In this document: positions 5,233 through 62,036 of the stretch, piece by piece
How the letters are laid out: the number at the start of each line of letters is the position of its first letter
How positions within the stretch are numbered: the stretch's first letter is position 1
Source of the DNA: Auanema rhodensis
Taxonomy: Eukaryota; Animalia; Nematoda
Length of the DNA stretch: 64,000 nt
NCBI GenBank assembly: GCA_964057225.1
Contig: OZ059898.1
Location: forward strand, 13,330,001 to 13,394,000
Direction of reading: 5' to 3'
The notes under the pieces: model-generated
Databases searched by the model: none
Told to the model about the DNA's origin: nothing
The model's input: the letters and a program-made list of their open reading frames with translations, nothing else
Translations under genes and position numbers: made by a program

Positions 5233-6721
5233 AGTTATAAAATGAGTTGGATAGCATGATTAAGTACCTCTGAACAGCTGAAATGCCATGACGGAGAGAA
5301 TGGAATAAGGAAGGGGGGGGAGTACAAATTTAAAAAAGTTATATAAGCTTTTACACATTTTGAAGCGACGTTATGGCGTTGAAAAAAGGAAATTCGTTAT
5401 TTCGTGTCAAAAGGGCAGTCAAAGTTACATATTATGTTTATATATTATATACTATATATATATAATATCTATAGATATGATGATGATGATGAAGAATAAT
5501 AAAATAATTATTTAAATAACTTTAAAATTGAAAAATTAAAAGCAATTTTAGCTTGTTATTCAACTTTCCAGCTAATTATATATAGTATATACTATATATA
5601 TAAACAGCATAATATATATATTTAAATAAACAAAACAATATTCATGAGTAATAGCTTACAGAGCTTTCTTTTTTCCTTCTGTGTTACTGACAAAAGGCTT
5701 TCCTTAGATTTCTTTTTTTCAAAAATTGCTATGTTAAATGGTTAAAAGTAGAAATTTTGATAAAGAATTTTAGTTTTTTTTGTATTTATATTTTCAAAAT
5801 ATGAATAGTAAATGACAATGTGCGAAAAAGATATGTCAATATAGCCACCCATTAGTATGGAAATTGTAACAAAATACGAATAAATCGCTTAATATGGCAG
5901 GCAGGTTCTTTTTTTGACAAAAAGAAAACAACAATATAAACAAAACATAAGCAGAGATTTTTTTTTTGTTAATAAGAAGAAATATACGAGGTAGTTTATA
6001 TGCATAAACGACTATTATTTTTATTTTTTTGAATAAAAAATAAAAAATAAAATAAAAGTTTGTTGGAAAGTATATTCGTATATCAGATTTTCTATACAAT
6101 CTTCCAGATTTGTATTACTATAGGCTAAGCTTGACCAAATTCAATATGAGAAAAGCTTGTTGGAACAAAGAGAGGAACATATGAGATTGGACAGAAGTCT
6201 CTTTGATACGATTTGGAACACTATTTTTTATTTTCGAAAAGAAAATGAAGGAGAACAAGTATAATATGACAGATTTAACGATTTTTGAAAGAAAATTTGT
6301 AGTAAAACTTCTTATAAACTGCAAATCGTTTTAGTTAAGATATGCAAAACAAAAGGAGGAGCTGTATGTTTACTAATTCGTCTAATTCATCAAAGTTGGA
6401 ACAAATAAAAAACCTAAATTGAAAGAATAAATAAATAAGCAACGAAGAAAAAAAAGGAAATATGAAGCTCAGCATGGTATATAGTAGGTTGTGTAGTCTT
6501 TGGATATATCTTTTCTTTTTTCGGGAATAAACGCTCCTGCTATTAGGAAAACTCAAAAGATTGATTCATGTTGTCCTGCTTCATAGAAGTCAGAACTGAC
6601 ATCACGAGCTGTGTGCTTGAGCTTCTGGTGGTAGTGGTAGTGGTGGTGGTGTTGGTGGTGATGATGATAATGGCGGTGGTGTAGCCATTCGGAGAAACAA
6701 CAGAAATGGTAGGAGAGTGAG

Positions 6722-6727
<6 letters not shown>

Positions 6728-6792
<65 letters not shown>
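6728..6792. repeat. (GA)n microsatellite
   Basis: Perfect GA run. It causes the poly-SL stretch in the ORF track. Confidence 0.95.
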
Positions 6793-6796
<4 letters not shown>

Positions 6797-9014
6797 GAAA
6801 GATATTGAACTCTAGAAGATTGACGACAGCAATAATGTAAACAAGAACTATAAAGAGAAATATGGTGGGCATTTATCAGTTTTTTTTCTGATCTGTGTTT
6901 CTTCTTCTTTTGTACTTAATGAAGAGAAAAAGCTTTTTATAACTAAATAATTTGTAAAGATAGCAGCAGAGTGCTGGTTGGATACATATATCAAAGCCGT
7001 TTGTATTATTTATAAGAGAACTTGTTGATAAAATATATATTTTGAAATGACAAAGAATATATTTATCATGGAAAAATTATAAAATGATTCAGATTACAAT
7101 AGAGAAAAGACATTTTTGCTTTTAGTATGAAATCGAAAATGGATTAAGCCTTGATGACTACTGGAAGTTGCTTCCGGTTGCAATAGAACATGAATTTCGT
7201 GCAAAGTCAGAATTGAAAGACAAAGAGCAAGACGAAAGTTTGAATTGATTACATCTTGTAGAAGAACATGAACATTACAGCTTTTTTTAAACCAAAAGAA
7301 GAAGAAAATGATATTACTATTTCATTTTCTGTATGCTTTCCTTCCATTCAGAAAGCATCTATGGCAAAGTGACTGAGAATTCATTTGGATGTCGTTGTCG
7401 TCGTCGTCGTTGTCGTCTCTGTCGTGAAGCTTGACAACAGAGAAACTTCGTCGGACAAGTGAAGCAAGTATGTTCATTCAGCGCTCAACAAGACAACTCT
7501 TATATCTGAGACTTTTTTAAATAATTAAATGTAATTAACTAAGTGCTTTTTCTATAATTTGATCTAACAAAATCAGAATATAAAATATTCTCGTAAAATA
7601 AAGGTTTTTCTTTCCTTTTTTCAAATACAATTTCTCTTATTTCATATATTCAAATTTTGACTTAAATCAGTATAGAGAGACACAAGGAGACAGGGGGTGA
7701 TGAGTGAAGGGAATGAAGAGGGGAAGAGAGTTTATAGATAAAAAACTTTTATTTCATTTCATATATATCTTTTCAGATTAAAACAAAAAATATTTAATTG
7801 AGGTGAGAGGTCAAACGAATACAAACCAGAATTAGTTGAACGGATATATGATGGAAAGCTGCACTTTCAACTCCATGTGCAGAACTTTCAGAGAGAGAAA
7901 TATCAGTCACATAGTTCGTACCATAATGATCAGAAAGTTATTCTCTAGCTTTTAATTTTATTACAAGTAATATGGTGAAATTGAGTTAAAGAGAGCAATA
8001 GAGAAGTAGACAGAGGGAGAGAGCAATAGAGAAAGAGAGAGAGAGAGAGGTTTAGAGGGAAATCCACACCATCGTTCACATAAGTAAAGAGGACGAACGT
8101 TAGCAAGAAATGAGACCAACCTTAAAGAAAAAATGAAATAAAGCTCGTAAATAATGGTAAACAGATTATGAAGAATATTATAGAGCAAATAGAAAAAAGT
8201 AAGACAGACGAGAGAGACATAAGAAGGACGAAGAGCTTGGCTAACATTCGAACGCCTAGAAAAGAACAACAGGATAACAGTAAGAAAACAACAAGAGCCA
8301 ACAAGTGCCTTGGAAAATTCCAAAACCATAAGCATGTTAATATGGCAAAAAAGTTTTGTTCTTGAGACTCTTATAGGAAACTGCAAAAGAATGAGATCGA
8401 AGTCAGTTAGATTTCACTTAGATACGTTCGTGTACTTTCTTTAAGCCTAGTGTTTCGATGACGTGGTTATGCAATTAGCCCTGAGGACTTGTGGTGTTAA
8501 GATCCTATGACTGGATGTAAAAAATTGTTGAAAAGCTAAATATGAACTTCGAAAAAGTTGTAATAGCATAGGAAAAGTAAGAAAAAAAACAAAAAAAGAA
8601 TAGAGAAAAGTAAAAGAACATGATCTAGTGGAACATTAGATAGACAAATAACTGAAGTAGAGGTAAAGTTTGAGCTATTGAGCTGATCAAAAAAAGAAAA
8701 AGAAAAGAAACAAAAGGGATTTCTATAATGATATGAGGACAATGACGACAACGAGGACGACGACTATGAAGAAAAGAAAAGAATCTAGAATAGTATATAA
8801 CTTGAACAACATAAACTATATAGTATAACATATAAATATTATAAATATGTATATGAAAATCATAATTTAAAAACTACATTTTGACTTTATTTATATTTTA
8901 ATTATAATATTATAATTTGAAATTGGTTTTTGTATTGTTTTCATTTGATTCTTTGAGGATTAAGAGAGTGGGGGATGAATTTCGCATAAGCAATTGTTCT
9001 ATTCTTATACTTCC

Positions 9015-21632: not shown

Positions 21633-22474
21633 TTTTAGTGATTCACGTAACAATTCACGTGAAAATTATAAGTTATAGAAATTTCATTTTGAAATATCAT
21701 CATAGTGATTAGCGGTCGGATATGATGCAAAATGAAATGAAGCATACATTCCATACATCAAGCATCTATCTATACAGGTTTTGACTATTTTTTCTAATTT
21801 GCAACGTAAACGTATTTTCCAAAATATTCTTTAAAAATGATTATTTGATATTTCCTGTCATATATCATATCATATATACTATTACTATTGTTAGTATATA
21901 ATCTTTCATTTCTCATAGATAAAAAGAAGTTTTCAATCTTTCGAAACATTTTCCTTTCAAAGCAGTTTGGTGTTTGATTTTAAAAGCTTTTTTTATTTGT
22001 TTTTTTTTTGCTTTGAAAGAACAAAATGTTGATTGATTGTGGTTTTAACTTTTCCCAAAGATTATATGATTTCTTGACCCTTAACCTTACTTTATACCTT
22101 ATCTAGATAGACACATCTAGTTATTTGATCAAATGAATGTTTGATCCACCATAATACATGAGATTCTCCTCCTACAATTGCTCCATATCTTCTCAACTTT
22201 TCATAGCTTAGTTCAACTCTCATTCTGCCAATAACTACTATGCCATGAGCAGATAATTGAATTATGATATCCTATATTACAATCTTAACTATACTTCTGC
22301 CTGTATATATAAACCTATATAGTAATTCAGTTATGTTCATATCCTCTTTAATTCTCAAATCTATAACTTATGACTATCTAACTATTTATTCTTTTATTAA
22401 TTCCTATATAGATTTCATATTATCAATCTTAAACATCAATATATGTTGTGTTTTCCTGTACTTTGTAATACTAG

Positions 22475-27265
<4,791 letters not shown>

Positions 27266-49600: not shown

Positions 49601-52600
49601 TTCTTGAAGACGATGGAGGTAGAAGATGGATGGTTTTGGAAGTGCATCGAATACTAAAGGAATAAATTATTAATCAGTAGTGGTTGGATTAAGACAAACT
49701 CTAAACACGTTGTTTCCAATGCCTCCTCCTTTCCCCTGTACTGAAAGACAGTTAAAGCAATTCGTAATAAAGCTATGAATTTTTGGGCACGAACGCCTTC
49801 GCCATCAGACCACACAGCCCCGAGTATTCTTTTTGGTAGTCTATAGATGACCCAGAGAACACAAATAAGAATGTCCTGCACTTCTTCCTGAAAACACGAA
49901 TGTGGACTTAGAAATAACTACCGCGAATTACTTGATCTAATTTTTCAGCGAGAGGAGTAGGCGTAGACGCATTATTAATAACGTTAACAGATGATCGGAA
50001 AGTCTCGGTAATTTGTACTGGCCTTCTGTCCAACGATCGCCACTTGTTAGTGGTTCTCAATCCTAATTGCATTGTTTGAAACTATCCATGTATTATTTTG
50101 ACTTACCAGTAGGAGGAGCTTCAGGTGTTTCGGCAATAGCTGCTTGTAACTCGTGAATATTATCTAACGCAAATCGTAGCAACGGAACATAAAGAGTCGC
50201 TATGCGACGTTGTATATTCTTTAAGGAAAAAGTATAAATTTTTGGTACAATTTTACTCACCATATCAGAATAACGTTTGTCATAGGAATGTTTTGCCAAC
50301 AGATTTCGAAGAATAGCAATAGGTTTTCTTCTGTATTCACGAGGTTCTCTCAAACACGCATTCAGTTCCTTAAAACGTGACATCAACAGATTTATATTAA
50401 TAAAGCTCAACTTACTTGAAATAGCAACCCAACTGGAAAATGCCTAGCACAATAGTTTATACTCAACCACCATTCATCCGAGCAGCAAGAGTCTGAATGT
50501 AATTTCAACATATTAAATATCTAATTTTCTTCTTACATCTATCACTCTCGTTTGCTTCAGCAAGAGACGGAGATTGAAAGACTTGATGGAAAAAACGGGA
50601 CAGAAATCCTGTGCCATTTGCTAAATGGATTACTTAATGAATTCGGAACGTGCCTAGATTTACCTGTACTAGTTACTGAGGTGTTTTCTGTTTGAATTCC
50701 CTGATAATGTATTCGTTGAATCTGATTTTTCCCATCTAAAAGAACTGGTAAACACAACGGTAACCAGTGTTCATGTTGTGTGAGGATACTGAGAAAGTCG
50801 TTCTTATACTCTCTGAGAACCTGAATAAACTTATTTTTATTCTGTGAAATATGTCCTTACTTTTGAATCATTATAATCAAGTCGTTGAATTGCAAAATGA
50901 AACCATTTCAAAACAATGCCTCTATCTAAGAAACTCAAGCTACACTGAAATATAAAGCTTTTATTAATCGGAGTGAATCATTATTAAACAAACCCTCATG
51001 AAATAAGCAACTGCTGTATTAGCAGAGCGACATTCTTCTGGTATTTCCTTATGCTTAACAATAATTTGAGGTATGACTGTTTCAAACAATGAAGTCATCT
51101 GATCCGTGAGTTCAGAGGAAAATCGTTCCCGGCGAGAAGTCTAATAAAAATACATATTTAAACTAAAGAGAAAAATTACCTTATAAAGTGATTTATGAAC
51201 GACGACTTGAGCGATACTTTTTATACACACATCAAAGAAAAACCACAATTGCCTGAATATAGCGGCTAGTTCGTCTATCGAGCCTTGAACTTGCCGAAGC
51301 TAAAAATCATCTAATATACAACTTCAAAATCGAAACAATCTTTACCAATTCCGGTAAATATTTACATATGGCAATATGTGTTGGTTCATTATTATCTGGA
51401 TCATCGGTTGTAAGAAAGTGAAGACGAACGAAATTCTTTAATAGTCCAATTCGGTCAGAGGAAGTGCGATCACAAATTGATATTAAAGCACTAAAGAACA
51501 TAATTTTGAAAAACATTTAAACGATAATGGTAAACCTCAAGGTACTAAGAGCCAATTGATCTGTTGGCGCCTTGGAGAGAAGAGAGAGTAACCGAGCTAG
51601 CACTATATGAAGAAAAGGTAGAAGCTTTTCAACAGGTACGTCACAGAGACCCTAGTAAGAAAGTTATTAAAGCATTCAAACTATAAGGAGTACATGCAGA
51701 GTTAAAAAGGGAATGCAAGCTATGTTAGTTCACCGAACATAGGACACCTACCTGGGTTTTTTTAACTAAATCAAGTACATAAGGATCATTATCATCCGCA
51801 GAGGAAGATCGCGCGAGAGGAGAGCATGAACGAGCTGGATCAGATCCACCCGAAGGAGAAGATGATTTAGATATACGAGACTGAACAAATGCGGTAGGCA
51901 AACAAAAGAAATGGAAAGCAAAAATTGAAAAAATAAATCTAACCTGCGACAGATCAGCAGCATCTCCAGATATACGTTTATTATCTAATCTTTGGCAAGC
52001 CTAAGTCAGTTAATTATAATATCAAAATCTTTTAGAAAATTTACTTGGAAGAACGAATGAAGCTTTACTTCCGTTGTGAATGCAGACGAAACCATTCTTA
52101 ACCTGAAACGGAAAAGAGGCTTTTGATCCACCCAACGAACATCCGCAATCTCGTCCTATAGATTAACTTTTGAACATAAAACAAGCAAGGTAATGTTTCA
52201 AACCCCTTTTCCTAAACCTAGTGGCTTACATCTCAGATAATTTGGCGGCAAATCTATTGCGACTGGGAGAGCGAATTCTTGTTCATCATTTTCCAGGACC
52301 AACTTATCCTTTCTCCATACTAAAGGAAGCCAAGCATATCCCACAGGAATCTCTGCATTTTCAGGAGATTTGGCAGACACTTGCCCAGCAACAGATACAT
52401 GTGTGAAGGAAAATAATAAATGATCGTTAGCGGTGAAGGATAATGGCAATTGTAGTTTCACTTCATCACCTACACATTAATGGAATGTAAACTGAACTAA
52501 TTTATTTTATTACCAAACGATGGATTTTGCTGATGATGTTGAACACCACATGTTACAGCCGTAGTATAAGGACCACGAGGAGACAAACGATCCATAAGCG

Positions 52601-55600
52601 CCTATAATACTCATTTATATATAAGATACTATTTTTTCATCTAACCTGGTTTTCTTTAGCATTGTCACCACTAAGGAAACGAACAGTGCAAGCAATATTC
52701 CTAGCTTTTGAAAATATTTTTTGAGCATCGTACCTATAGAAGAAACATAAGAACATAAAATGATATGACTGAGATACTCACTTTAGACTTAAAGGGTAAA
52801 TATACAATAGGTTGACAAGCTCAGAATGAGGGTCGGCAGCGATATCGCCAAAAGATTGAAGTTCAAACATGGGGGGAGTTGGACTATCCTTGGGAGAAGT
52901 CCAAGGTTTTAAGGGATACCATGACGGGTTAAGACGGACTGAACATTACAAAAAATGAAGAACGAAAGAGCAGAGCTTACATGGAATTTCTGAAAGATTA
53001 ACAGATAAATCTACTTTGAGGGTCAATGAAGCATTCGGTAAAGCGAATTTTCCCGATTTTTCCAATCTGAAAAGGATCAAACCAATCAAATAAGAATGCT
53101 TAACACTTACTTTGCAAAATCATTAAGATGCTTATAAATATCTGTTTCAATAAACTTATTGTTTTCACATCTATAAAGTTGAATACTAGTAAACTCTTTA
53201 CAGGAGTTGTCTCCACGCAATTCCGGAAAAACGGGACTTAAAAGAAATATAAAAAATAAAGTATTTATCTAATACAAACCGTGCTCCCCAAGCAAAACGT
53301 TGTTTATAGCCTGCTAATCGTATGGTCGAAGAATGAATCAACTTTTGAAGTTTATTAACTGCTTTAGGGTCCACCGAAGATCTAAGAGATTTGATTTAGT
53401 CAAAGTTAAAGTTTAAGGCTTACTTCATATAAATATCACCTACGGTATCAGCTGACAATAAACGATCTACACGACAAACCACCCATATATCTTTATGTGG
53501 CTTAGCCACGGTACATAGTAGCTTAATTAACAAAGATAACAAGATTATCAATTGTTGGAGCAAAATACCTGATTAGCTAATTTACTGCTTAAGAGAGCTT
53601 TAGTCACTCCGTTAATATCGATATTTCCTCCAGGACTTGCTAAATTATCATCTCCACTACAGTCTATATTGAATTCCTCCGAAATTCTGCGCGATGAATT
53701 GGCATCAAATAGGAATATAGAAACGAAAAAAGGCTCAATCTCAAAAAAAACAGTAACAGTGAAAAAATAATGTTTGATTGTACCTGTTGCAAAACATTGT
53801 TTCCAGTCGGTAACTTAATCTCTAACTTTTTGAACTCTATTGAGAAACGAACAGCATGACCGATTCTAGTTAATGTTGATCTTCTTCGTCTAGCAGGCTT
53901 TGTAATAGGTGAGGTAGCTGTTGTTCCTCTTGATCTATTTAACAGACATGATTGCTCTCCTTTTGGTTCGGACACTGGCTGAAAATAATAAAGAGGTCAC
54001 GCATAAATTTCAATCAAATCTTACTCCCAATCTATAGTAAACAGAAAATAAGTTCCGCCTATCAACTATTGGGGGCTGTAATGCTCTCGCGGCTGAATTC
54101 CTACCTCTCCATATATTTACATCCCTTGCTGAAAAATAACAATAAATGCGAATGATTAATGCCGCCCACCTCCTGCACTATCTTCGCTTCCAATGCTTTC
54201 CGTATCTAGATTAGATTCATTCAAACTCTTGCCTGACTTATCTAACTGTTCAGAGCAGGCAGAAACTGAGTCTCCTAAATTTTTCTTTAAATATAATAAC
54301 AATGTAATTAGTACCTTTATTAGCCAAAGCAATAGCGCGATTAATGTGTAGCAACCAAGAAGAAAGTTCATCAGCATCATCACTAGCAATAACTAGCGGC
54401 TTTTGCTCACTTTTTTCATTACCGTCGGGACATGGTTCAATCTAAAAATTGAAAAATATTAATAATACATTATATATATAAACCTGTAAAACTGATTTCC
54501 CCTTCTTCATTGATTTCAATTGAGCTGAGTTCACTTTCATCGCAACTTGCTTCAGAGTATCATTAGCAGTTTTCCTCGTTTCAATGACAATATCTCCACC
54601 AGCCTCACGCCGTAATATACAATAACGCTTCTTAACCGCCTTAAAAACTCGATAAAAAATGAATTGTAATGCTTATAATACTTTTAAATTATCCAATAAA
54701 CTAGGATCATTTTTAACTATCATTACATAGCCTTCCTTTACCACATCAGTGAGGAAAAACCCTTCCATTGCCTAAAATTGAAAAATATATGGGAATTTTC
54801 TGAAAAACTTACAGCTCTTTCTTCTTCTAAAGCCATATCAGACTCAAAAACCAGACTTGACAAAGAAACTTCATTTTCAATAGATGAACTGAAACAGCTA
54901 TTTTCAATTTATAACAAATTCAAGTTTACCCAATATTCAGCCTGTTATAATCACCCATAAACTTATTGTAATTAAAAGTAATACTTCTATATGATGATGT
55001 ATACAAACGAACAGCCTCTTTTGTAAGCAGCCATTGCGCGGATGCAGCATCTTCAGGAGTTACAGGATGTACTACAGTTGATTGATCTGGTTCAATTAAT
55101 GTTTCCTAAATAAAAAAAAGAATTTTAATAATAGTACTATTACATACTTGAACATCATCTCGAGGAAATAAAAGAATTTCTCGTTGTGGATCATTTTCAA
55201 GTTGAATTGTACGTTCAGTAACAAATTTCTCATAGTCTAATGGTTCAGAAATAGGAGCAACTCTCTGGATAAAGAGAGGAGTTAAAATTATAAACTATAT
55301 AAAAACCGTGGGATTTTGAGTAGATATTGCATTTCGAACCGCTTCTCTCGCTTCACGAGCAACTCCTGGTTTACCTACCGCAGCCGTGAACCTGTAATAA
55401 GAAATGATTAATAAGTTTTTTTGCATACAAACCTATTGCTACCACGTTTAAAAGATAACACAGGCATATATAGTTGGATGCATTATAGTTTCAATTCAAA
55501 AGGTTTTCATTGTAACATATACAATGTATATAAAGGCGGCAACAAAAGAGATGTAGTACGAGGGAAAAATCAGAAACACATGCTAGCGAAACAAATGTTT

Positions 55601-55790
55601 TATCAAAAACTGTATAGAACAGAAACAATAACTATAGAATGATAACTCACTTCCGAAGCTGTGAAGAGTTTGTTCGAATGGATGTGATACTCTCAGGTAC
55701 GAGTGTAGAAGCATTACTTGAATTCCCAGAAACAATTGAACGGCGATCATCGGCCGTAGTGCTTCCCCTAGACGAGACGAAAGCTCGCAT
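46662..55790 (-). CDS. DOCK-D/Zizimin-type (DOCK9/10/11) GEF with PH, C2/DHR1 and DHR2 domains, multi-exon
   Basis: N-terminal [27 protein letters not shown] domain KEGYVM...KRRYCIL...ELSSWL. DHR1 motifs [19 protein letters not shown] and [13 protein letters not shown]2 motifs [26 protein letters not shown] and [24 protein letters not shown]. Ends SIGGVNA*. Confidence 0.93.
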
Positions 55791-56403
55791 GTGGTCTAGA
55801 TTAATGATATAACAAATGCATTAATCCTAAATAAAACTGTTTAATGTAGGGAAGTTGAAAGATGAAGAAAAATGTTTCATGAAAGGCCTTGAGTAATAAG
55901 ACGGACATAATCTAATTATTTAATCATCAGTTTTCTAATAAATCAATACGAGAGATAGTGATTTCACTTATAAGAGCATTGCGATGGAAAATTGAAAAAA
56001 AAAATTAGATGCGTAGCTTCCTTCCAAGCGGACATTGAAATTCAATAATAGAGCTAAGTCCATTTTATAAACATATTTCCGCATATTGCCGTCTGAATGA
56101 AAATAGTCAGTTCAAAACCAAGAGGTCATTCTCGGTCCTTCATGTCTTAATCAAAGCGGAAACTATAAACAATTCTCATCCAAACTAAATGCCATGATAT
56201 TTATAATTCAAAATAAATATGAAATGTTCTCACATCTATCTCCTTTATGATTAATTTCTTGTTCTGGCTAAGTTTTGAGTTTTTTTTTCATATTGTTTGC
56301 CAATGTGTTTCCCAGTCTGAAGCTTGAAATTGAGGAATTATTCTTGACCTACATTCCCGACCGTTTCTTTGCGTTTCTTAATTTAAAATGAAAGTAAACA
56401 TTA

Positions 56404-56418
56404 CACGTCATTGACGTG
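56404..56418. promoter_or_regulatory. Inverted pair of TGACGTG (CRE/UPRE-like) sites in the divergent promoter
   Basis: Perfect inverted repeat CACGTCA-T-TGACGTG, 130 bp upstream of ATG 56549. Confidence 0.35.
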
Positions 56419-56548
56419 AATGATGTACTACTAGTGTTCCCTATTCCTACGCTAATGAAGCTGACCGTATTGTATTGATTTTTCTGACTGATTGTTGCCA
56501 GATAGTAAGAAAAGTATGTAAATTCAATATTAATATCAGAATCGCCGA

Positions 56549-57108
56549 ATGTCATATTATTATCCAAATCGTGTAGTGTGCAAATTTTTCAATGGAACAC
56601 CAGGTTCATGTAGGTATGGAGATAATTGTAATTTCTCACATGATTCTAATAAAACGGCATTCGATCGTTCGTAGGTTTCACTTTGATATAGAAAAGATAG
56701 CTTGTTATTTCAGACGTTTTAAATATATTTCTCCGAATATTATATCAAAAGTAAAAGAAGAAAGTGCTACTGCAGTAGCAAAAGGTGTTACCGACCGAGA
56801 AGCAGCTAAGTCAGAACAATCAGCTCCACAGTACGTCATAAAAGAACTAATTTTATTGTCTTATTTTTTTTTTCAGAAACTTAGGAATTAAGACAAATGG
56901 GTATATATATGCAAATTAGTTTATTTCTTAATTTTGGGAATTATCTAGAAACTCCTTGAAGCAGCAAATTGCACCTTGCGAAAAGCAGAAGGAGAATGTT
57001 TACAGCCAGCTATCAGAGCTAGACCAGAGCGATAGGCTGAATTTTGAAGCAAAAAGTTTTACCCTAGGAAATATACCATATGTGCCGCCTTCAATAGAAT
57101 TAGCTTAA
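56549..57108 (+). CDS. NUP42: Miniature NUP42/NUPL2(hCG1)-like protein, 140 aa (exons 56549-56670, 56714-56830, 56877-56900, 56949-57108)
   Basis: N-terminal CCCH finger CKFFNGTPGSCRYGDNCNFSH. C-terminus VYSQLSELDQSDRLNFEAKSFTLGNIPYVPPSIELA* matches the Nup42 Gle1-binding tail pattern (F..xxFTLGxIPxxPP.xEL). Three short in-phase GT-AG introns. The ORF track shows only part of exon 2. Confidence 0.8.
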
Positions 57109-57197
57109 GTGGTTTCAATATTTATATTTAATATATATATGCTTATGTGACAGCTTCCAATGTGCAATTTTTATGAAAATTATATAAAATTCGGAAT

Positions 57198-59583: not shown

Positions 59584-62036
59584 TTATTTACAAGGAAAAG
59601 GAGTAATTTCCATAGTGAAGGGCTTTGGTGCACGTATTGTGCGGAGAATTGGGTCGTGCATTGGAGGTATAACACCGGTATGTTTAAACTTGAATTGTTG
59701 AAGACATGTGACGAAGAATAGAAACACCTTAAGAAATCAATAACAATGAATGGCAGCAAGTACTTGTTTAATAAATGTTTTGCTTCTTTTTTTCTAATTA
59801 AATGTGTTTACATAGCATTACCTCCATCCTAGCTAATGATTCGCCGGGACAAGATCGTTTGCCTACAGAAAAAGGGTTGACTCTATCATCACGAACAAAT
59901 TTCTCATCCTTCAAATAATAAATTGTATGAAGAAGTATGAGAAAAGTCTTCAAAACAATGAATATTATCAAACATTTACTTTAAGATGCCTTTCGGGACT
60001 AAAATATTCGGGGCGTTCGTATTCTGCCTCGTCGATATGGGCTGTTACAACTTGGGGCAAGACTTGTGTTCCCATGGGTAAGCGATAACCTGCAAATTAA
60101 AAAAAACGAACTTTTATCTTTGTTCTCACTTTAGAAAAACAACAAAAACCTTCGCAATTCACTTCCTTCATTGTAATACGTAAGAAATTGAAACTAATCA
60201 CATAACCCAGTCGGTACGTTTCTTGTATAAATGCTGCTACATAAGGCATTTTCTTTAAATCCTCCATGCGAATACTCTATTTATAGGTATTGAATATTGA
60301 TATTAAATTCATTTCTAAAATCTTTTTTACCTGTGAACGTCCTATTGTGTTATCAATTTCTTCGTGAATTTTCTGTTGTGTTTCGGGATAATTAATGAGA
60401 AAATGGAAAGCAAATAACAATGTTGAAACTATTGTTTCATATCCACCGATGTAAAAACCCATAATTGCCATAAGTAGTTGATTTTCAACGAATTCTTCTA
60501 TAATGAAAACCTTATCGTCTTTATGTATATTTTAAAGTGTCTTGATGATAAGAAAAAAAAAGTCTCACGTAACGTGAAAACGTCACTTGAATTTATTTTT
60601 AGTTAGACAACACAAAAAAGCGGCTGCATTCTTACAATAACAAATATATTTTTATTTAATAAGTTTAAATGATATTCTTTAATTTTTATATTTGTTTAAG
60701 ATTTAATTTAGTCAATTATAAAATTAATAACATGCCTTCATCCTTACTATCCCTTTGATTCATTTCTATTAAGAAGGCATCGAGGAAACAACTTGGTGCG
60801 CTATGATAGTCAATTGCATTTTTATGCTCATAAGTTATCTAAAGCATAAAATTCATCTAATCAGATTATCATTTTCAATTTCATTCTTTCAATTTGCCTG
60901 CCACCTCCCATTCAGATATGTATACCTGAGTTGAATTTAATCAAAATTCTCTTTTTTTCAGCCGCAAATATTAAAATTCATAGGAGATTTGAATATGAAA
61001 TCAAATGATATTTCTTACTTTACTAATATAGTCTGCAAGTTTATCTCTTGATATTTTACATTTATTGATTCCAAGATCAAGAACTCCATCTAAATACTTC
61101 AAAGCTGGTATTACATCCAATAGGTTCATGATGGGATTATTGTAATATTTCAGAAACTGAAAAGTAGCATATTTTAAACTAAAAAATAATAATAACAACA
61201 AGAAAAGTACATCAATTGCATTATTTTGAAAATAAAGTAAATTAGGATCATTCTGATCTTTCTGACACCCAAAGCTTAGTTTATCCATTATATTACTTAC
61301 GGCTATCTAAATAAAAACAAATAAAATTCAACTATTCTATAAATAAATTGTTGTTTTTACTGTTAAAATATGCTTCATATCAACTGATTTCATATCTTTC
61401 CTCATCATCTCACAAGTTAGTTGAGCTTGTTCGAGAATAATCGCCTGAATAATATTGTTGCATCCAGAAAAATCTTTATGAACACCTCAGATTTTTGCTT
61501 GCCCATTCCCAGGTCACGTAATAATGATAAAGTAAACTTTCTTTGAGATTTTACCCAATCATTTCTTTCATATAACAGCCCATACGGTCCCTTAAAAATA
61601 TATAAAATCTCTAATATATAATAGATTTACAATTACATTGAGAACATACTCATGAAATTTACTCAAAGGTCGTCCGCTATAAGATTCTCCATCTTGAATT
61701 ATTGTGCGTTTTAAGGCCAAAAATCATTTGATAAGTTGAAAATCTGACGGAAAACAAACTGCGTAATCAGCAACAACTACAGTTGGATGAGGAAGCCAGA
61801 TCGTGAAAACAGATCCGTATTGCTTTTTATATTGTAATAAAGTTTTTTCAATATTTGAGTAATTAATAGATAATGAATTTCCTAAATTATCATTTGAAGT
61901 AAAGTCCTTTTGAAAAAAATTATATACCAATTATTGGCCATGGTGTTGGTCCAGGTGGTAATCCTTTAATTCGATTGATATTGCTCCAGATGAAGAAGAA
62001 TACTAAGATAGCTAATATTAGAGCAATCAGAGCCAT
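59584..62036 (-). CDS. Cytochrome P450, CYP2 clan, resembling nematode CYP14A, multi-exon
   Basis: N-terminal TM anchor, PPGPTPWPIIGN, WVKSQR, I-helix GGYET, ETYR (ExxR), PERH and heme loop FSVGKRSCPG. All exons are open, but intron 2 lacks an AG acceptor. Confidence 0.9.

Follow-up and report, generated by a model that had tools for sequence, protein, structure and literature searches.

A probable NUP42-family gene without FG repeats in Auanema rhodensis, encoding a CCCH zinc finger and a Gle1-binding-motif-like tail

Gene model and transcript structure

The window (the whole 64-kb stretch of A. rhodensis DNA analyzed, with a GC content of 33%) holds a four-exon gene on its + strand between 56549 and 57108. 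The joined coding sequence is 423 nt long, giving 140 codons and a stop, and combines an N-terminal CCCH zinc finger, a polar linker and a C-terminal tail resembling a Gle1-binding motif (Table 1). GT..AG ends bound all three introns, of 43, 46 and 48 nt, and the acceptors are nematode-style (TTTCAG or ATCTAG). The predicted product terminates in ...FTLGNIPYVPPSIELA ahead of the stop codon and contains no FG and no GF dipeptide: of its seven phenylalanines, none precedes a glycine, the next residues being F, N, S, D, K, E and T.

Transcript evidence came from contigs of the only four public runs to contain this stretch (X1 to X4), all small and from one study. These contigs are spliced and therefore represent RNA. 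The junctions 56670/56714, 56830/56877 and 56899/56948 (cut +1) were present in all four runs, with GT..AG boundaries and zero mismatches. In X2, a separate 500-nt contig spans 56538-57166 and carries loose letters, CAAGTTTG, ahead of 56538; together with the AG at 56538-56539 these read ...CAAGTTTGAG, the sequence in which the SL1 spliced leader of nematodes terminates. The leader end is joined at 56540, 9 nt upstream of the ATG, where the genomic sequence is tatcAG followed by aatcgccgaATG. Low-depth unspliced contigs at 56332-56513 (X1) and 56367-56535 (X2) end shortly upstream of this acceptor. At the other end, the X2 contig places the 3' end of the transcript near 57166, ~58 nt past the stop and inside the convergent gene.

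Because SL1 is joined 9 nt ahead of the start codon, upstream coding exons are excluded. This 5' end, the convergent gene at the 3' end and the small size of the introns (43-48 nt) together indicate that the mRNA is complete and leave no space for FG exons; no FG-rich open segment was found anywhere in the 64-kb window. On RNA evidence from one study, the FG-less 140-residue product is the whole protein. An initial annotation, made from the letters alone, had proposed four exons encoding 140 residues without an FG dipeptide. The peptides that it quoted are present where it placed them, its three junctions are borne out in every run by a spliced, SL1-capped transcript, and its reading of an FG-less protein agrees with an mRNA that has no further exon between SL1 and the 3' UTR.

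Table 1 Features of the NUP42-like gene
Feature	Position	Strand	Description or evidence
Probable outron (5' part of primary transcript lost on trans-splicing)	56332..56535	+ (strand inferred)	Low-depth unspliced contigs
SL1 trans-splice acceptor (AG 56538-56539) and 9-nt 5' UTR	56538..56548	+	X2 contig, genomic sequence
Exon 1	56549..56670	+	CDS residues 1-41 with split codon; CCCH finger; junction 56670/56714 in 4 runs
CCCH finger, residues 11-31	56579-56641	+	Exon 1
Intron 1	56671-56713	+	GTAGGT..TTTCAG
Exon 2	56714..56830	+	S/K/A/E/Q-rich polar linker, no FG, no Pfam match; junctions in 4 runs
Intron 2	56831-56876	+	GTACGT..TTTCAG
Exon 3	56877..56900	+	24-nt micro-exon, linker, no family match; contig pieces 56877-56899 in X3, X4
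Intron 3	56901-56948	+	GTATAT..ATCTAG
Exon 4	56949..57108	+	Residues 88-140 and stop
Gle1-binding-motif-like tail, residues 107-139 (approx.)	57004..57102	+	PDB phmmer, core residues, shuffle test
Core residues F120, F125, P131, P135	57043-45, 57058-60, 57076-78, 57088-90	+	HMMER alignments
3' UTR	57109..57166	+	X2 contig end; overlaps 3' end of convergent minus-strand gene (from 57140)

Neighboring genes

Downstream lies a convergent minus-strand gene with a PALP domain (PALP/cysteine-synthase-like), whose 3' end, from 57140, is marked by the start of an X2 contig. The 3' ends of the NUP42-like and PALP-like mRNAs overlap by at least ~27 nt (57140-57166), and this overlap explains why X1, X3 and X4 each show both transcripts joined in a single contig. 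Beyond the PALP gene are cytochrome P450 exons (59798-60471, - strand; Pfam p450 1.5e-12).

The upstream divergent gene (- strand, 55000-55828) likewise receives SL1 by trans-splicing: at 55828, where a 6879-nt contig ends, the letters continue into CAAACTTGG, which is CCAAGTTTG in reverse complement. The introns of this gene, on the minus strand, lie at 55105-55146, 55265-55306 and 55390-55648, and a DOCK-C2 exon at 52201-52461 (1.4e-13) suggests that it is probably a DOCK-family gene. In the 711-bp gap between the divergent SL1 acceptors, a low-depth X1 contig (56111-56312) contains a minus-strand intron at 56185-56233 (CT..AC); this contig could represent the outron of the DOCK-like gene or an exon upstream in it; alternatively, it could come from a short antisense transcript of its own. 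Elsewhere, the window contains GARS_N and GARS_C (GART) exons at ~22850-24600 and long simple repeats of the CT/AG dinucleotide type, read as SLSLSL... in open frames, at 6543-6872, 7961-8386 and 22264-23086.

CCCH zinc finger

Exon 1 encodes a CCCH finger with the spacing C11-x9-C21-x5-C27-x3-H31, giving the protein the N-terminal C3H1 zinc finger that characterizes animal NUP42. Pfam matched it to zf-CCCH_4 (1.9e-9, residues 10-32) and zf-CCCH (1.6e-6). Its best matches among solved structures were 9y10_A (2.5e-7), 6nzl_A, 1rgo_A, 1m9o_A and 6fuw_C, and the nearest solved fingers are the RNA-binding CCCH domains of TIS11d/BRF2, TTP, CPSF4 and Unkempt. By itself, a CCCH finger is generic and not diagnostic of NUP42.

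Gle1-binding-motif-like tail

We compared the last exon with all 177,635 distinct PDB sequences using phmmer (up to E 10) and obtained five matches, the top four of which were all NUP42 Gle1-binding-motif chains. The human NUP42 chains 7tbl_f (E 0.0041), 6b4j_C and 6b4f_C matched with E-values of 0.004-0.005, and yeast Nup42 (6b4e_C) with an E-value of 0.62. The E-values of 0.004 are modest because the motif is only ~30 residues long. In the solved complexes, the hydrophobic core of the motif is formed by F409, F414, P420 and P424 in yeast and by F401, F406, P412 and P416 in human; it buries Trp, Tyr and Leu/Met residues of Gle1, and the F414D substitution abolishes binding (Lin et al. 2018, PMC5998080, main text and Supplementary Note 2). 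The worm residues F120, F125, P131 and P135 align on these four positions in both species, the 5/6/4 spacing between them is kept and so are the intervening L-G and [IV]-P positions. At the sequence level, the protein thus ends in the F-x4-F-x5-P-x3-P motif of NUP42.

Ungapped BLOSUM62 scores were 66 against the human motif (13/30 identical) and 54 against the yeast motif (11/30), and none of 20000 whole-protein shuffles reached the human or the yeast motif score. On this test and the kept core residues we rejected a chance resemblance of the tail. The 64-kb window contains no second such motif. A single-sequence AlphaFold2 model of the tail was poor (pLDDT 67) and had no Foldseek match in the PDB, a result that carries no information for a motif folding on its partner.

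Search for relatives

In the large collections, relatives were sought with single exons as queries. With exon 4, phmmer found nothing at E ≤ 0.001 among 1.84 billion representatives, and hence no near-identical or close relative; about distant kin this blank is uninformative, because a motif worth 20 bits falls short of such a cut-off. No relative was found by a word search with exon 4, and exon 2 in its 99-aa open frame (region 41-81) yielded no candidate with three shared 5-mers. A search of the ESM Atlas by features gave only rows at chance level (0.84 or lower), and in metagenome contigs none of 357 pattern matches to exon 4 was confirmed. The open reading frame of the neighboring PALP exon retrieved many fragments, with identities of up to 82% across the conserved part in common and a single shorter match that reached 89%, but no near-identical copy among short fragments. 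For synteny, a local tblastn with the 140-aa model found no NUP42-like tail in four eukaryote-like contigs (L001-L004). The protein of this species and of its close kin is absent from the collections in any form detectable exon by exon; on more distant nematode orthologues these single-exon blanks carry no information.

Nup42 goes without mention in part of the C. elegans nuclear-pore literature. It was not among the proteins screened by Neumann et al. 2010, who did not detect Gle1 in C. elegans (PMC2951903, Table 2). That blank, for a protein now placed at the pore as GLEL-1, indicates that nematode pore proteins of the cytoplasmic face are easily missed by homology screens and that nematode export-platform proteins are strongly diverged. 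A Meloidogyne javanica secretome paper (PMC10236835) contains one mention of Nup42, and some nematode NUP42 annotation may already exist.

Identity, proposed mechanism and alternatives

We consider it likely that the locus is a real, expressed nematode NUP42-family gene reduced to a finger and a Gle1-binding tail, which would act by capping Gle1. The initial annotation had also described a NUP42-like protein with these two modules, and this description holds: the zf-CCCH_4 match identifies the finger, and the tail agrees with the Nup42 Gle1-binding motifs of both human and yeast, down to the four core contact residues. Its further term, Gle1/DDX19 co-activator, goes further than the literature supports, in which the effect of NUP42 is ascribed to stabilization of Gle1 and not to direct activation of DDX19 (Lin et al. 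2018, PMC5998080).

What we infer is orthology to NUP42, location at the pore, binding to Gle1 and contact of the finger with RNA. Going by the structures from yeast, Chaetomium and human, the tail would form a small hydrophobic core (F/F/P/P) and with it cover a hydrophobic patch exposed on the worm Gle1 C-terminal domain, thereby stabilizing Gle1. The finger, of a type that binds single-stranded RNA, would be placed beside the Gle1-DDX19 site of mRNP remodeling; that it binds RNA is suggested by the finger type. Docking of transport receptors on FG repeats, a role of NUP42 in yeast and humans, is absent in the worm protein, in which finger and tail are separated by a polar, FG-free linker of ~75 residues. 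The yeast Nup42 fragment 397-430 alone gives nuclear-rim staining, so anchoring at the pore via Gle1 is possible without FG repeats; the purified yeast motif stabilizes Gle1, and with the human motif the Tm of the human Gle1 CTD increases from 37 to 50 °C. In C. elegans, GLEL-1 (Gle1) and DDX-19 are found at the nuclear pore, and a partner therefore exists in nematodes. Because FG repeats are present in both fungal and human NUP42, parsimony suggests that the FG domain was lost in this lineage.

Such a loss would not have occurred if the gene were a truncated paralogue and a conventional, FG-bearing NUP42 lay elsewhere in the genome, in which case the short protein, in soluble form, might act on Gle1 as a competitor or regulator. 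We regard this as unlikely, given that the window holds neither a second motif nor an FG-rich open segment and that NUP42 is a single-copy gene in yeast and human. A related possibility, that the transcript is a short isoform of a longer gene that includes its FG exons in different tissues or stages, draws on the origin of the RNA in four small runs from one study, but we rejected it, and find it scarcely credible, on the SL1 junction 9 nt ahead of the ATG, a 3' UTR that runs into the convergent gene, introns too small to hide exons and a window free of FG-rich open segments.

The protein could instead be an unrelated small CCCH RNA-binding protein with no role at the pore, its tail resembling NUP42 by chance or convergence. 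CCCH fingers are common, the tail match is short (E ~0.004) and the single-exon searches supplied no orthologues that could show conservation of the motif. The four best PDB matches were nonetheless all NUP42 motifs, from two kingdom-level lineages, and the retained core, its spacing and the shuffle result described above point the same way, as does the placement of the finger at the extreme N-terminus and the motif at the extreme C-terminus, like human NUP42. With assumed residue frequencies, we roughly estimate that the string F-x4-F-x-L-G-x-[IV]-P-x2-P-P arises with a probability of ~1.5e-10 per position, or ~0.002 per 10-million-residue proteome. An unrelated protein is accordingly very unlikely in our assessment.

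If the gene is a reduced NUP42, as we favor, a minimal family member without FG is a new variant, and its mechanism is no surprise given the yeast work. A complete, expressed FG-less form with finger and tail would amount to a natural deletion experiment. It suggests that what NUP42 cannot do without is the finger and the Gle1 clamp, in keeping with the view that the motif mainly stabilizes Gle1 (Lin et al. 2018). For studies of the nematode pore and of germ granules, the protein would also be a candidate for the NUP42 that is missing beside GLEL-1 and DDX-19, and its length of only 140 residues would suit it to structural and genetic work. More tentatively, nematodes as a group, perhaps including C. 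elegans, might carry NUP42 solely as a finger-plus-tail protein of ~140 residues that nucleoporin lists and gene finders have overlooked. Were this so, the conserved job of NUP42 would lie in chaperoning Gle1 and positioning an RNA-binding CCCH finger beside the DDX19 remodeling site, not in FG docking. The gene would gain in interest if nematodes turned out to have no NUP42 other than the short form and if its finger proved functional.

Comparison with known NUP42 proteins

The TIS11/TTP-type and CPSF4-type proteins give the best matches to the exon 1 finger among solved structures, but they have tandem fingers and no Gle1-binding tail, whereas the worm protein has a single finger. Human NUP42 (NUPL2/hCG1; UniProt O15504) has 423 residues and is ~3 times longer than the worm protein. 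It carries a CCCH finger at its N-terminus, the same place as in the worm, although the first spacing of the worm finger, C-x9-C, is unlike that of human NUP42. To our knowledge, the role of the zinc finger of NUP42 is uncharacterized. The C-terminal Gle1-binding motif of the human protein includes the FTLGxIP..PP string common to the worm tail. Besides the motif, human NUP42 consists mostly of FG repeats (PMC5998080), of which the worm protein has none.

Yeast Nup42/Rip1 (S. cerevisiae, 430 aa) has its Gle1-binding motif within residues 397-430; the motif lies at the extreme C-terminus in the worm, human and yeast proteins, with the yeast core aligned with the worm tail. Unlike the worm protein, yeast Nup42 belongs to the FG nucleoporins; it matches the worm tail less well than human NUP42 does (E 0.62, 11/30 identical), and we know of no CCCH finger in it. 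NUP42 is generally treated as an FG nucleoporin; work in yeast has found that Nup42 serves Gle1 through its C-terminal motif and that loss of the FG repeats alone is tolerated. With 0 FG in 140 aa, the worm protein is no FG nucleoporin and, judged by its two ordered modules, is best described as a putative NUP42-family homologue.
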